Source: Podarcis pityusensis
Lineage: Eukaryota
DNA length: 64,000 nt
Reading direction: 5' to 3' (one strand)
Assembly (NCBI GenBank): GCA_964106645.2
Contig: OZ067044.1
Shown here: positions 3,065 through 61,900 of the stretch, in pieces
Position numbering within the stretch: the stretch's first letter is position 1
Layout: every line of letters starts with the position of its first letter
Program-made: the position numbers and the translations under genes
The notes under the pieces: model-generated
What the model saw: the letters and a program-made list of their open reading frames with translations, nothing else
What the model was told of the DNA's origin: nothing
The model's database searches: none

Positions 3065-3297
3065 CTGTGCTCGGTGCTCTCCAACTGCAAACTGTATCAT
3101 GGCAATGCCTGGAGTATGGCTGTCATCAACCCTTTCCACGGTGCTGGAGTCTATTTTCAGGTCACTGCTAATTTCTGCACTCTGTATAAAGTCTTCTGTT
3201 TTCAAATCTTCTACCTTCTTCAGCTCTCCGTTGGCCAACTGAATGATAGACCCTTTCATGAAGTAAGGAGGCAGTGTAGAAGGAGCAGCTGCTGAAG
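3065..3297 (-). other. ATXN1: N-terminal part of the AXH (ataxin-1/HBP1) domain
   Basis: SAAAPSTLPPYFMKGSIIQLANGELKKVEDLKTEDF...FAVGEHRAQ matches the AXH domain start. The domain is split by the intron. Confidence 0.9.
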
Positions 3298-4945
3298 AAG
3301 GTACAGGCTGGATCAGGGGGAGGTGGATCTGGGCCTGCACGACGGCTGCCTGGTAAGCTGGTTGACTTGCTAGCGACTCAGCGTTGAAATTCTCGCTTTT
3401 TGGAATGGCGGTTGTGACAAACGTGTGAGGCACTGCTGCCAACTGGGGAGATGAAGTGGCGATAGCAGGAGGAACCCCTGTTGAGTCGAGATCTGCATTG
3501 CCTACCGGTATTAGGAGGGGCTGAGTGCCTGGGATCACCAGGTGCTGTGGCAGATTTCCAGGATAGCCAAAGGCTTGCTGTTGACTGCTTAGGTAGCCAA
3601 TTACCGGTGGCTGAGTCCCAGTGTAGAAGGCCGCAGCAGGCAACCCAACGGGGAGGTGCTCTGAGGCGCTGTGGGTGGTCTGAATGACTGTGTGAGGGGA
3701 CAAAGTGGCAACTGCTTTCACCCCTTCGTGGCCCATAGTCTGTTGCGGAGATAAAGCATAGGATCGGTGGGCTGTTTTTCCTAAGTGCAAGCTTCCCTTT
3801 TCGTTGAGGGCCAAGGGAGGTGTTTCTCTATTGGTGGCTTGTTGGACCTCCATGTCTGCAGTAGGTGTGCTGCTATTGGGAACAACCATAACAGAGGACC
3901 GGACACTGGTGGAATCGCGTGCAATATAATCAGCAGGACCCGAATGGACCACCACGTGCCTGGCCTCATAATGATGAGGAGATGGTTTATTGCCTGATTT
4001 GACGAGACTCACTTCTGAGGATGGGGAGATGCCGTAACGCCTGCTCTTCTCTATTTCCCCGTTCAGTATTTCTTTTGCTTGCATAGCCTGCAGCCTGCCG
4101 CTCTCAGACTTCTTGGAGGACTCCCGAGTGACAAAATGGCCGCCAGAATCTGCATATTGCACCACCACCTGGGAGGAGGGGCCAAGGGCAAACGCATGAG
4201 GAATCACTGCCTGGTGTGGATGCAAATGGACTGGGATGGCTGGAGGAGAGACGTTCCTAACTGAGCCTTGTGGAGAGCTGGAAATGTGGACGTACTGGTT
4301 TTGCTGGGTCGGTGGAGGGGACCCTGCTGTGATCAACCCGGGCGCCCGAACGAGATGTGGCTCAACTTTGTGCCCTTGCTGGTTTAGGTTGCTCATGCTG
4401 GCCAGCAAAGTGGAATAAGCCTCCAGCTGAGAACGCTGGGATGGAGTTGTGGCAACAGCAGTGGCAGAGGCCGCCGTGCTGGTTGCAGAATTGGCTGTCG
4501 GGGAAATCAGTGGGGAGGGGATGAATCCGGCGTATGGTCCGCTATACGGGGGCCCTACAAACTGGAAAGTGTGCTGCAGGTGTGCGTACTGCACTGGGGA
4601 GACAGGTGTCCCGGCCTGAGAAAGTGCAGGCGGGTACACTGTGGTGGTGGTGGCTGGAACAGACCTAGGAGCGCTAGGTGGGGAATAATCTACTCCTGCA
4701 GACAGCGATTTGTGTAAACCTATTCCATGTTGTGAACCAGCTTCCGCCGAGGTCCCTCCAGGCCTGCCTCTCCCACCCAGGCTGCTCTGGCTGCTGACTG
4801 TGCTGGAGAGCCATGTTAAGTTGTCCGCTCGGTGGTTTTCACTGGCCAGAACTAACGGCTTCACCTCGGAAGGCAGGCTGGTGGCAGGGATCTCTCGCTT
4901 CTTGGGCGGCAGGCTTTCGTTGCTCCTCTCCTGGTTGGATTTCAT
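3065..4945 (-). CDS. ATXN1: Ataxin-1, first coding exon (codons 1-627, ends within AXH domain; CDS continues in an exon outside the window)
   Basis: Translation begins MKSNQERSNESLPPKKREIPATS and includes SQRSQLEAYSTLL, QQNQYVHISSSPQ and LPPYFMKGSIIQLANGELKKVEDLKTEDFIQSAEIS...QFAVGEHRAQ, all typical of ataxin-1. Phase-0 donor CAG|GTAATA at 3065/3064. The last 30 aa of the 657-aa track ORF are intron read-through. Confidence 0.97.
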
Positions 4946-5102
4946 TTTTCACCGGCCCCTGCCCTCCGCTTCTGTGGCTTCACTGCCTGGCTGGCTCCGA
5001 TTTCAGTCTGCTAAGTGGAAAGTCACATTTGATTTCTGAAGGGGATCCAGAGACTTCATGAGGAATCATCTCCCTGTGAGCACACTCCGCCAACAAGCTG
5101 CT
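4946..5102 (-). other. ATXN1: 5'UTR portion of the large ATXN1 exon
   Basis: Lies between the acceptor (ccctccag|AGCAGC at 5103/5102) and the ATG at 4945 (AAAATGA context). It resembles the human ATXN1 UTR segment as I recall it. Confidence 0.85.
4980..5069 (-). CDS. Upstream ORF, 29 aa (MIPHEVSGSPSEIKCDFPLSRLKSEPARQ), candidate conserved microprotein
   Basis: ATG at 5069-5067 (G at -3) and TGA at 4982-4980, 34 nt before the main ATG. The frame is also open back to the exon start (11 more codons, phase 0). Confidence 0.55.
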   Translation of the reverse strand: MIPHEVSGSPSEIKCDFPLSRLKSEPARQ

Positions 5103-5171
5103 CTGGAGGGAGAGGGAGAGGAAGAGAGAAAAAGAAAGGGAGAAGGGTAACATTAACATCAAAACATTAGC
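5103..5171 (-). promoter_or_regulatory. Splice acceptor: branch-point candidate, long polypyrimidine tract and CAG
   Basis: Minus strand reads gctaatg...gttaatgttacccttctccctttctttttctctcttcctctccctctccctccag|. Confidence 0.85.
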
Positions 5172-5454
5172 AGTAAGGGAAAAATAAAAGAAAATGAATA
5201 TTAAAATCAGGAGCAGTGCATTTGTTCAGAATTTCAACTAGTAGGTCTACAGCCATGCCGTAAAAAACAAAACAAAAAACCAAGAGGATGCTGTATGCTG
5301 CAATTAAGACACTAGGTTAATCAAAATTTATTTCCCCCCTCAACACATACCTGGAGGCAGAATTTTCAAGGGTGAATCCCTTAGGATGCTATCCCAGGCA
5401 CATTTACAGTAAACATAATATACTATCAGGTTATTGTCCTCTTCCTCATAAGAG

Positions 5455-5815
5455 CATAAGGCTATCAATGGTTACTAATATTGGTGTTGATGTATTAACT
5501 ACACCAGTGTTTCCCAAACTTGGGTCTCCAGCTGTTTTTGGACAACAACTTCCATCATCCTTGACCACTGGTCCTGCTAGCTAGGGATGATGGGAGTTGT
5601 AGTCCAAAAACAACTGGAGACCCAAGTTTGGAAAGCAGTGACCTACACAGTCATAGGCAGTTTGCCTCTGAAGACTAGCTGCTGGGGATCATGTGGGGAG
5701 AGAGTGCTGCTGCACCTGTATCCTGCTTGCGGGCTTCCCCCAGACACCTGGCAGGCCACTGTGAACACAGGATGCTGTACTAGATGGGCCTTTGGTCAGA
5801 TCCAGAAGTCCTTTT
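5455..5815 (+). mobile_element. CR1-type LINE 3'UTR fragment, interrupted by a MITE
   Basis: aaggctatcaatggttacta...gggcttccccagacacctggcaggccactgtgaacacaggatgctgtactagatgggcctttggtcagatccag is typical of squamate CR1 3' ends. Confidence 0.7.
5505..5640. mobile_element. Palindromic hAT-type MITE (~135 bp)
   Basis: Long TIRs cagtgtttcccaaacttgggtctccagctgttttt / aaaaacaactggagacccaagtttggaaagcagtg. 8-bp TSD aactacac/acctacac. Confidence 0.9.
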
Positions 5816-58949: not shown

Positions 58950-61900
58950 TACTCAATGCCAAAAAATATTTACAGAGGAAGTATTCAGTAATGATTATTG
59001 CATAGCTTACTCACAACATTCACTGTCGTCAGTTGGGACTCCCAGATTATCCTTCACCTTGAAGAATTTGCAGGCATTGCTGGATTGTTCACAGGCCCTC
59101 AGCGGTGCTCTCTTTCAAATAAAATAGAACATTTTTTGAGTAAGAAAATCTGTATGCTGTACTTGACAAATTGTCCGTAGGTTTCTATAAGCTTAAAGGA
59201 ACAAATGTAATTAAGACTGGGGATCTCACTCCTGGCTCCCAAGCTTAATGACTGGCTGTGCTTGCAGTTTCGATTTCTGTGCCACCACAACTGAGATGGG
59301 ACTTGCTTGGTAAACACATAAACACATATGGCTCCACTACAGCAAAGTAATCCGCAAAGGTGGGGCTTTATATTGTCACGATATCGGCATTATATCTGTG
59401 CTTCATTTAGTACACAGGGGTGAAGAGGCCACCCACACATAAGCATGTGCATGGTCAGAGCTGTTATTAGGAATACATCATAAGTCTGCATGGTACTGCA
59501 CAATCTGAAGCAATAAGTGCACTGTACAATTCTGCAGTGCTGTGAAAATTTCCACTTGGCTATCATCCAGACCCACCCACTAAGAAAAACACTTACAGTA
59601 TAAAGTGCAACAGCAGTTAAAGAGCATTCAGTATGTTCACAGATTCCCAGCTTCAATCCCGAATAAGGAGGATTGTTATATTTTCCCTAGTTTGTTTTTC
59701 CGTATTTGTTATACTACCTCCCGTATATCTGAGACACATAATCTGTGGTTCAGGAATTTCTGCTAGTGGATGTAAGGAACATGACAAACATGCAACTTCT
59801 AAGTACCAAACTAGAATTTCACCCTCTGGTCATTGTGCCAAATTACTCCCTCCCCCCCTCCCATGTAAATTATGTGCAGGTACATGACTGAAGTGTGGAG
59901 AAAAGTATAAATACAAAACAGTTTGTTCACTAATATTTTGGAAAAGGTGATGTGAGTTTATGGCTAATGAAACAGCAAAATCTGCAATTAAAAAGTGACT
60001 CCTTCACCTAACTTTATGTCAGAATGTAAGAACCTTTGAAGTCATGTTATACTCTCAGATCATTGGTTCCACTGCAGTGCACTACAGAATATTCCGCAGG
60101 CACAGACTCCAACTGTGCTACTACTGCACAGAAGGATGGCCCCAGCACAAAAGGTATCAAAGCGACTTACAATTATAAGAGCATACCTAATACAAACCTT
60201 TAAACACACACACACAAAATTATTGACTGAAATGGCTCATCCATCATCATTCAATGACATCTGAAAGCAAAATGCTTGCAAAGGAAGTGGTATGCGTGGC
60301 AACAGAACTTGCTGGCAGGCCACTTCTCATATTGGCCCAATTGGTAAACTAATTGATGAACAGGACTGGGCCTTATGTATTTCCTCTACTGCAAGAAAGC
60401 TAACTAATACAACTACAAAATTGAACCAGAGTTATGGTGGGTCTGTATCTTTCATTTCTTTAATTTAGCATAAACAAGTTTTTCAACAGTAATAAAATTT
60501 GATGGAACATACCATGCTTCAAATTATAATATGAGAGACCAATGTATTAACAGTTGGAAATGATGTACCAGCAGCACTATAGCATTTTCCTTTGCAAGCA
60601 AAAGTATTTTGCTATGAGGAGAAGGGAGCTCCTAAGCTTGATCTGAAAGCCAGACAGCTGTGCCTAACAATGCTCTACTCTCTTGGTATTTGCACAATAC
60701 CTCCCTCTTTCAGTCCTGCGAGGTGCTCTGTAATTTGGTTGTTCTAATTCAGTTCAGGTAGCACTAATAAAAATGCAGTTACAAATGCCAGCAACCATGT
60801 TCCCATTTAATTTTTCATATTATCTTATCACTAATCCTTCATTCGCTTGTATACACTAGTTCACTTCCTCTTCTCTTTTGCATGGAATAAGCCTTAAACA
60901 GGTTGACTCATGTTCCAGTGACACCAGGCAGAGATGAAACAAGGCTTTTTTCAAGTGCATGCCATTCACATTATTTAAAATGCATAGTATGCATCATCTT
61001 CAACATGTTTCTAGGGTTCGAAGTAGTGAATTTGTTATTCTTTCCTTTAGCAGTAATATCACCACCACAGAGTAAGACCCACTGAAATTAATGGACATTA
61101 CATGCAGGTCCTGCTATTGGAACACTCATTATCTGAAATTTCAGTTATCCAAACACAAAGAATTCTATCTAAACCTTGCTACACGAACAGCTGATTCAGA
61201 TGCCCACACTACCTGAGTTTCCCTACTTCCTTGCTTATTTGTGTTTTGCTGGTTGGAGACAGGCATATTGGGCAAAAACCATGGCGGCAGAGATATCAGA
61301 CAAATCAGGCAGCATGAGAGATCAGACAGGGAGTAGTTTGTCTTTTGCTGGTTGGCTGCAGCAGTTTGGGGCAGAAACCCAGGAAGGAGAGAGACTGGAC
61401 AAATCACAGATTAGAAATATTCCCATAGAAAATAATGGAAATAATCAGCTTGTTATGTGAACGGTCACCTAATGAATGATTTCCTGGGAACGCACTGTGT
61501 TTAGACAGTGGAACCTGCATGTAGTAACTTAGCATCATTAATTCCAATGGGCCTACTCCAAGTAGGACTTAGTTGACCACAACCAAATACATTTGTGGAT
61601 CACTTATTTCTATTCCAAGTATGAAACACACACTGCTCATCATGAATGCATAAGCTGCACTAAATTTAATTAAAAATTCCAGGGTTCACTCCACACCCCA
61701 CTGCTGAAAGCCAAAGAGACACAGGGGCCACAATCCAACAAAGAGTTAACTGAAATTCATTCATTGGGTCCAACTTTGCGTTGCACTGTGGTCAGGGCAT
61801 CTTACTACCTGCTCTAAACACTGCTAGTACAATGATTATCCGGTGTCTATGATTAAGCAGTGTCTATTTATTAAATTTGTTAGTTGCTTTATATTGCCCA

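Follow-up and report, generated by a model that had tools for sequence, protein, structure and literature searches.

Introduction

The 5′UTR of ATXN1 is complex and contains five Ribo-seq ORFs, one of which, a 29-aa upstream open reading frame (uORF), was annotated as protein-coding and translated in the GENCODE Ribo-seq ORF paper (Mudge et al., bioRxiv 10.1101/2021.06.10.447896, Fig. 4B). The human uORF was reported there to be conserved to chicken, Xenopus, and zebrafish and to carry a strong PhyloCSF signal. In addition, the ATXN1 5′UTR lowers reporter output ~10-fold (PMC7462065, PMC7462066), and both of these papers cite Manek et al. 2019/2020 for a translational repression that, as represented in these citations, is attributed to out-of-frame upstream AUGs. 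The 5′UTR also carries a functional miR-760 site (site 2) ~42 nt before the main AUG (Nitschke et al. 2020, PMC7462065). A further frame, alt-ATXN1 (Bergeron et al. 2013), is an out-of-frame ORF nested in the ATXN1 coding sequence. ATXN1 dosage matters in spinocerebellar ataxia type 1 and lowering this dosage is a therapeutic aim; elements that set ATXN1 translation are therefore of real interest.

Short uORFs that encode conserved, ribosome-stalling peptides are known from other genes, including the MAGDIS uORF of AMD1/AdoMetDC, the fungal arginine attenuator peptide, and the uORF of CHOP/DDIT3.

Here, we analysed a window of 64,000 nucleotides from Podarcis pityusensis (GenBank assembly GCA_964106645.2, contig OZ067044.1), by which we mean the whole stretch of DNA; it is free of N stretches. 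The minus strand of the window carries a 29-codon uORF that is the squamate orthologue of the human-annotated ATXN1 uORF. Both belong to the same gene, comprise 29 codons, and lie in the leader part of the start-codon exon just upstream of the ataxin-1 start; homologues are found among vertebrates, and the human copy was matched by its published length and position. The human peptide given in an earlier note on this DNA agrees indirectly with that 29-aa length and with a primer used for mutagenesis in PMC7462065. The earlier note had proposed that ATXN1 mRNA may be functionally bicistronic. This agrees with the published status of the human uORF as translated and coding, but it also means that the idea is not new: earlier publications cover the uORF, the fact that human cells translate it, and its conservation among vertebrates, and the window adds the reptile copy. 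Our further additions are modest: a skate homologue, the lack of a uORF copy in one bird ATXN1L leader, the substitution pattern in a small sample, a conserved nested 18-codon ORF, and the location of the mammalian miR-760 site inside the uORF.

Compared with the systems above, the uORF resembles the repressive uAUGs cited from Manek et al. in that its AUG belongs to the long leader of ATXN1 and is out of frame with the main ORF. Like alt-ATXN1, it has been proposed as a second product of ATXN1 mRNA, but alt-ATXN1 lies inside the coding sequence and not in the leader. A long frame of the alt-ATXN1 type is absent from the window, where no same-strand out-of-frame ORF of more than 62 aa was found inside the 3065-4945 exon. 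With the stalling uORFs (MAGDIS, arginine attenuator, CHOP), the ATXN1 uORF shares its shortness, a conservation over hundreds of millions of years, an end close to the main AUG, here that of a dosage-sensitive gene, and conserved terminal residues. Unlike stalling uORFs with peptide-level selection, it shows a dN close to dS.

Results

The uORF lies in a transcribed start-codon exon of P. pityusensis ATXN1

Direct reading of the minus strand placed the start codon of the uORF at ATG 5069 (5069-5067) and its stop at TGA 4982-4980, giving 29 codons (4983-5069) and thus confirming the position that the earlier note had assigned to it. The ataxin-1 ATG follows at 4945, 34 nt past the uORF TGA, and the uORF frame is +1 relative to the main ORF. 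The exon is laid out as follows:

5103..5125, minus strand: polypyrimidine tract and AG splice acceptor, reading ...ccctccag/AGCAGC; RNA depth ends at ~5100
5070..5102, minus strand: first 33 nt of the exon, 5′ of the uATG, with 1- and 2-nt indels among species
4980..5069, minus strand: 29-codon uORF with its TGA stop, by direct reading; orthologous ORF in nine tetrapods, a teleost, and a skate (33 codons)
4946..4979, minus strand: spacer of 34 nt from the uORF stop to the ataxin-1 AUG; 31-40 nt in tetrapods and indel-rich
3065..4945, minus strand: ataxin-1 coding part of the exon, 627 codons, with donor CAG/GTAATA; 90-92% identity to squamate ataxin-1

The main ORF showed 90-92% identity to ataxin-1 of Anolis sagrei, Sceloporus, Pogona, and geckos and 82-84% to that of turtles, alligator, and birds; being closest to squamate ataxin-1, it identifies the window as squamate reptile DNA.

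Transcription of the uORF was evident from stranded RNA-seq of the same species. In two runs (X23, X24), positions 4300-5098 were covered at 1-7x, with the first mate always on the plus strand, as expected for RNA from the minus strand. Coverage of the exon ended at ~5100 and depth was zero across 5146-5474. A 796-nt contig of a related organism (X5) stopped at 5099, and its 407 further letters mapped elsewhere, as a spliced leader would. Together, the RNA-seq edge and the break in this contig confirm the exon boundary and show that the uORF is transcribed. The first base of the exon is 5102, and a squamate transcript (L001) joins at the homologous AGCAGC.

The uORF has the layout of a regulatory uORF, with a usable uAUG context and a position upstream of, out of frame with, and ending before the main AUG. 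The uATG has a G at -3 in the window and in all tetrapods, and a purine (G or A) at -3 in every species; the context of the main AUG, with an A at -3, is likewise conserved among species. Two further ATGs, at 5059 and 5028, are found in the leader part of the exon, the latter with a stop codon immediately after it.

No AUG-started extension of the uORF through the upstream exon

In the window, the uORF frame is open upstream as far as the exon edge at 5102, from which the earlier note had suggested that an upstream exon could extend it. The open frame in 5070-5102 is not conserved because of the 1- and 2-nt indels between species in this part. BLAST of the 5′ end of the squamate transcript L001 located the preceding leader exon:

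59015..59111, minus strand: upstream 5′UTR exon of 97 nt, with a GTGAGT donor at 59014; 77% identity to the L001 5′ end

By homology with L001, this exon is probably spliced to 5102 in P. pityusensis. Across the predicted junction, the uORF frame would run back 23 codons to an in-frame TGA and contain no ATG. In L001 itself, a TAG spans the junction, in addition to a 1-nt indel that shifts the frame. As read from these two exons, there is no AUG-started extension of the uORF, and the suggestion of a longer N terminus does not hold.

Aside from this, ATG 59019-59017, if spliced to 5102, would start a 13-codon uORF that spans the junction and ends at 5066, with its TGA overlapping the 29-codon uATG (ATGA, 5069-5066). 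This 13-codon uORF is not conserved; its counterparts in L001 and Anolis differ in frame and length.

The edges of conservation coincide with the start and stop codons

The ATXN1 leaders of nine tetrapods were compared, namely those of the window, the squamate transcript L001, Anolis sagrei, alligator, tortoise, a passerine, echidna, fox, and the frog Spea. Further leaders were those of skate atxn1a, atxn1a of the characiform Salminus, and one bird ATXN1L; the loci were found through their ataxin-1 proteins. All nine tetrapods had the same ATG, 29 codons, and TGA, with no indel and with a spacer of 31-40 nt, and the 90 nt could be aligned without gaps between the window and fox, echidna, bird, turtle, alligator, and frog. 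In the skate, a 33-codon version was found, whose sole length difference is a 12-nt in-frame insertion (4 codons). In the teleost Salminus, a 29-codon ORF at -270 to -180 (L011 9731-9820) starts with MIPHE and has R-L-R where others have R-L-K. It ends 180 nt ahead of the annotated start, as compared to 31-40 nt in tetrapods; an intron or an expanded purine-rich spacer may lie in between. Only the peptide termini are conserved in fish. The deeply conserved residues are the N-terminal MIPHE and an R-L-K/R close to the C terminus. These observations bear out the conserved start and stop described in the earlier note, in line with the published Ribo-seq and PhyloCSF data that treat the human copy as translated and coding. 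Frame-breaking indels or loss of the ATG or stop, which the note had listed as evidence against its proposal, were seen in none of the nine tetrapods, the teleost, or the skate. The skate homologue with its in-frame insertion makes the uORF frame older than reported.

Among the tetrapods, the uORF stood out from its surroundings in both substitutions and gaps:

5′ flank of the uATG: 1.26 Fitch changes per site; gaps in 7/34 columns
uORF codons 2-29: 0.56 Fitch changes per site; gaps in 0/84 columns
spacer to the main ATG: 1.32 Fitch changes per site; gaps in 15/46 columns

The uORF is thus an island of constraint bounded by its own start and stop codons. When nucleotide-only evolution was simulated with the rate observed here, the 29-codon ORF was kept in 9/9 tetrapods in only 0.6-3.7% of runs, and this ORF together with a nested 18-codon ORF (see below) in 0.03-0.4%. 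Its integrity, without indels between indel-rich flanks, therefore goes beyond chance, as for a regulatory uORF, and the reading frame itself, with its start, stop, and length, appears to be under selection.

The three codon positions of the uORF are constrained about equally

The earlier note had described the uORF as apparently protein-conserved, with several third-position synonymous differences to the human copy. In the nine tetrapods, however, variable sites were distributed over codon positions 1/2/3 as 11/11/11 and Fitch changes as 16/14/17, revealing no excess of synonymous changes, an outcome that the note itself had named as speaking against its proposal. We estimated omega with our own GY94 likelihood implementation on a fixed species tree, a small sample of nine tetrapods and ~47 substitutions. 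For the uORF, omega was 0.74-0.75 (profile interval about 0.39-1.47), with a dS of 0.75 and a dN of 0.56. This value is indistinguishable from 1 (p = 0.39), whereas omega = 0.133, the value for the 583 gap-free codons of the adjacent ATXN1 exon (tree dS 4.47, dN 0.60), was rejected for the uORF (p = 9e-8). The synonymous rate of the uORF is hence about six-fold below that of the ATXN1 coding sequence (0.75 vs 4.47), and its dN is close to its dS. When the sample was restricted, omega was 0.91 for amniotes alone and 0.65 for sauropsids alone.

Low dS together with a dN close to dS is the signature, in this small sample, of an open frame that is kept under added nucleotide-level constraint, unlike that of a peptide under ordinary purifying selection. 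The coding-type pattern reported for the ATXN1 uORF by GENCODE was not reproduced by the nine-species omega of 0.74. Since this value rests on nine species and ~47 changes, it is in tension with the published PhyloCSF claim and does not disprove it; being small but deep, the sample fits a kept ORF plus nucleotide constraint over a kept protein.

We consider, with a probability of roughly 0.55, that the uORF acts as a cis-acting translational gate under added nucleotide-level constraint. Scanning ribosomes would meet the uAUG with its purine at -3, translate its 29 codons, and reach the stop 31-40 nt ahead of the ataxin-1 start, a distance over which not much re-initiation is to be expected. 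Most ataxin-1 would then come from ribosomes that skip the uAUG by leaky scanning or re-initiate quickly, and the uORF would thereby dampen the output of dosage-sensitive ATXN1. In this mechanism of leaky scanning and re-initiation, which we infer, selection would hold the frame open (start, stop, and length) and keep the three codon positions about equally. Because the codon positions are held about equally, the extra constraint would lie on the RNA sequence itself; candidate sources are the 18-codon ORF inside the uORF and binding sites like that of miR-760 in mammals. For this reading, the present data supply the ORF, the evidence that it is transcribed and conserved, and the pattern of its substitutions; translation in human cells and repression by uAUGs enter from the literature. 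Some points count against it. A simple model in which any uORF will do does not call for constraint that is uniform over the nucleotides. GENCODE calls the ORF protein-coding on a strong PhyloCSF signal. In addition, the conservation of MIPHE and R-L-K/R, with six synonymous codon differences in Salminus, could reflect a function of the peptide or a nascent-peptide effect.

A trans-acting microprotein is a doubtful explanation of the conservation

The selected unit could instead be the peptide itself, as a stable trans-acting microprotein of 29 aa that is possibly SUMO-modified or active in the nuclear pathway of ataxin-1, as the earlier note had envisaged. We regard this as rather doubtful, although the literature speaks for it with a PhyloCSF-positive, Ribo-seq-supported human ORF annotated as coding (10.1101/2021.06.10.447896). 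It would also account for the exactly kept length, for the in-frame nature of the skate indel, and for the finding that 6/10 residues that Salminus has in common with tetrapods are encoded by a different synonymous codon. In contrast, the absence of a third-position excess and an omega of 0.74 are not what purifying selection on a peptide in tetrapods would give, neither for a microprotein nor for a conserved-peptide stalling uORF. Between alligator and skate, nucleotide identity by codon position was 19/17/17 of 28 and the three frames gave similarly similar peptides; between alligator and Salminus, it was 19/12/10. No hydrophobic or structured segment is evident in the peptide sequence. A search of the 40-aa open frame from the exon edge against a protein collection gave no match and no entry of 22-70 aa, a weak negative as microproteins are rarely called.

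The SUMO version of this explanation rests on two motifs in the peptide:

5022..5033, minus strand: IKCD, SUMO-consensus-like; kept in sauropsids and fox, lost in echidna, frog, teleost, and skate
4995..5006, minus strand: LKSE, SUMO-consensus-like; LK[SP][ED] in amniotes, lost in frog, teleost, and skate

Both motifs and one SP site are present in the window peptide, as the earlier note had stated. Two psi-K-x-D/E motifs occurred in only 0.09% of composition-preserving shuffles, and they are kept in most amniotes, which favours a role of the peptide. The acceptor lysines and acidic residues, however, are not conserved: one or the other is lost from both motifs in frog, teleost, and skate, and echidna has also lost the first motif. 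Anolis, echidna, and frog lack the SP site. From these sequences, SUMO modification of a trans-acting microprotein has little support.

A nested 18-codon ORF is conserved in nine tetrapods and a teleost

The ATG at 5059 opens a second frame within the uORF:

5003..5059, minus strand: nested 18-codon ORF in the +1 frame, which is the main-ORF frame; weak AUG context with a pyrimidine at -3

Its start, stop, and length were kept in 9/9 tetrapods and in Salminus, where a CTG>CTA change converts its stop from TGA to TAA; the ORF is absent in the skate. Salminus thus retains both 29 and 18 codons despite a middle part that has diverged beyond alignment.

The nested pair of 29 and 18 codons might be the selected unit, with constraint in two frames explaining the missing codon periodicity. 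Several observations agree with this. Both ORFs were retained together in very few of the simulations above, several sites that vary at first codon positions of the longer frame fall on synonymous third positions of the 18-codon one, and Ser3 and Leu7 of the 18-codon ORF are invariant in 9/9 tetrapods. Over the same bases, omega was 0.63 for the 18-codon ORF and 0.93 for the 29-codon frame, but neither value differs from 1. Further evidence weighs against the pair: in every species the base at -3 of the second AUG is a pyrimidine, a better AUG stands 10 nt ahead of it, the skate lacks the ORF, and codon periodicity is missing also outside the overlap of the two ORFs. The 18-codon ORF is also unmentioned in the GENCODE Ribo-seq ORF set as described in 10.1101/2021.06.10.447896. 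We therefore consider it very improbable that the pair is what selection acts on.

A wider version of the translational gate joins several of these points. The uORF would not be an ordinary protein; the nested 29- and 18-codon frames would have been open since the bony-vertebrate ancestor with their codon positions equally held; the gate would be sequence-specific; and the published deletion of miR-760 site 2 (see below) would be confounded. As a whole, we hold this combination to be unlikely. If true, the annotation of the ATXN1 uORF as protein-coding would rest mainly on frame integrity.

The miR-760 site falls within the uORF and is not deeply conserved

The functional human miR-760 site has its counterpart near the end of the uORF:

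4993..4999, minus strand: position homologous to the human functional miR-760 seed match; reads CGGAGCC, one mismatch (G:U wobble) from CAGAGCC

The site falls within uORF codons 24-26. Site 2 as described in PMC7462065 and the window sequence thus share their place in the uORF, but the 7-nt seed match is broken in the window and in 6/9 tetrapods overall; the perfect match CAGAGCC was found only in bird, fox, and L001. With the seed broken in most of these leaders, miR-760 cannot explain the deep conservation, and we rejected the site as its cause.

The location of the site inside the uORF complicates the reading of published mutagenesis. In the uORF frame, the site-2 deletion primer printed in PMC7462065 reads leucine, lysine, and then TAG. 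By our reading of this primer, the 3-nt deletion of miR-760 site 2 also truncates the uORF by six codons. Since the deletion creates an in-frame TAG, the small basal rise in reporter output that was ascribed to lost miR-760 binding may be confounded.

Stable RNA structure was likewise considered and rejected. The minimum free energy was -43.3 kcal/mol (z = +2.17), with every one of 200 shuffles folding more stably, and RNAalifold of the alignment gave -14 kcal/mol with a covariation term of +1.19, providing no covariation support.

These data bear on a further explanation, in which the 90 nt would be conserved as a nucleic-acid element, either a platform for miRNAs or RNA-binding proteins or a DNA regulatory element, with the open frames as by-products. 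Even constraint across the codon positions, at a rate six times lower than the neutral one of the adjacent coding sequence, would fit such an element, as would two overlapping frames that both remain open, a functional mammalian miR-760 site inside codons 24-26, and the low degree of structure in the leader, as for an accessible binding region. It does not fit the coincidence of the constraint edges with the start and stop codons or the improbable retention of the ORFs in the simulations. Salminus, in addition, keeps both frames although the middle part is unalignable, the miR-760 seed match is broken in most of the nine tetrapods and in the window, and the structure lacks covariation. On balance, we judge an element independent of the reading frames to be improbable.

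ATXN1L carries no recognizable copy of the uORF in one bird

Following the suggestion of the earlier note that the ATXN1L leader might contain a paralogous uORF, we searched the 10 kb upstream of the ATXN1L start in one bird (Porphyrio), in which the leader exons are unmapped, and found no homologue, while bird ATXN1 as positive control gave E ~1e-18. The bird ATXN1L leader (Porphyrio, L010 9964-10003) is very GC-rich and contains a single uATG at -37, which is out of frame and meets no stop before the main ATG, resulting in an overlapping uORF. This leader design differs from that of ATXN1, where the uORF ends before the AUG.

Further observations at the P. pityusensis locus

At position 4919, both RNA runs read A (2/2 and 3/3 reads) where the window has G on the plus strand. 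The difference is a synonymous AAC>AAT change in ataxin-1 codon 9; the uORF itself showed no read differences. The ataxin-1 coding part of the exon (3065-4945, minus strand) contains only two glutamines at the position where human ataxin-1 carries its polyglutamine tract. Close to the leader exon, the intron that precedes it holds a high-copy interspersed repeat at 5475-5662, with reads from both strands, a summed word depth of up to ~317,000 in all four runs, and many variant letters and loose ends in the read data.
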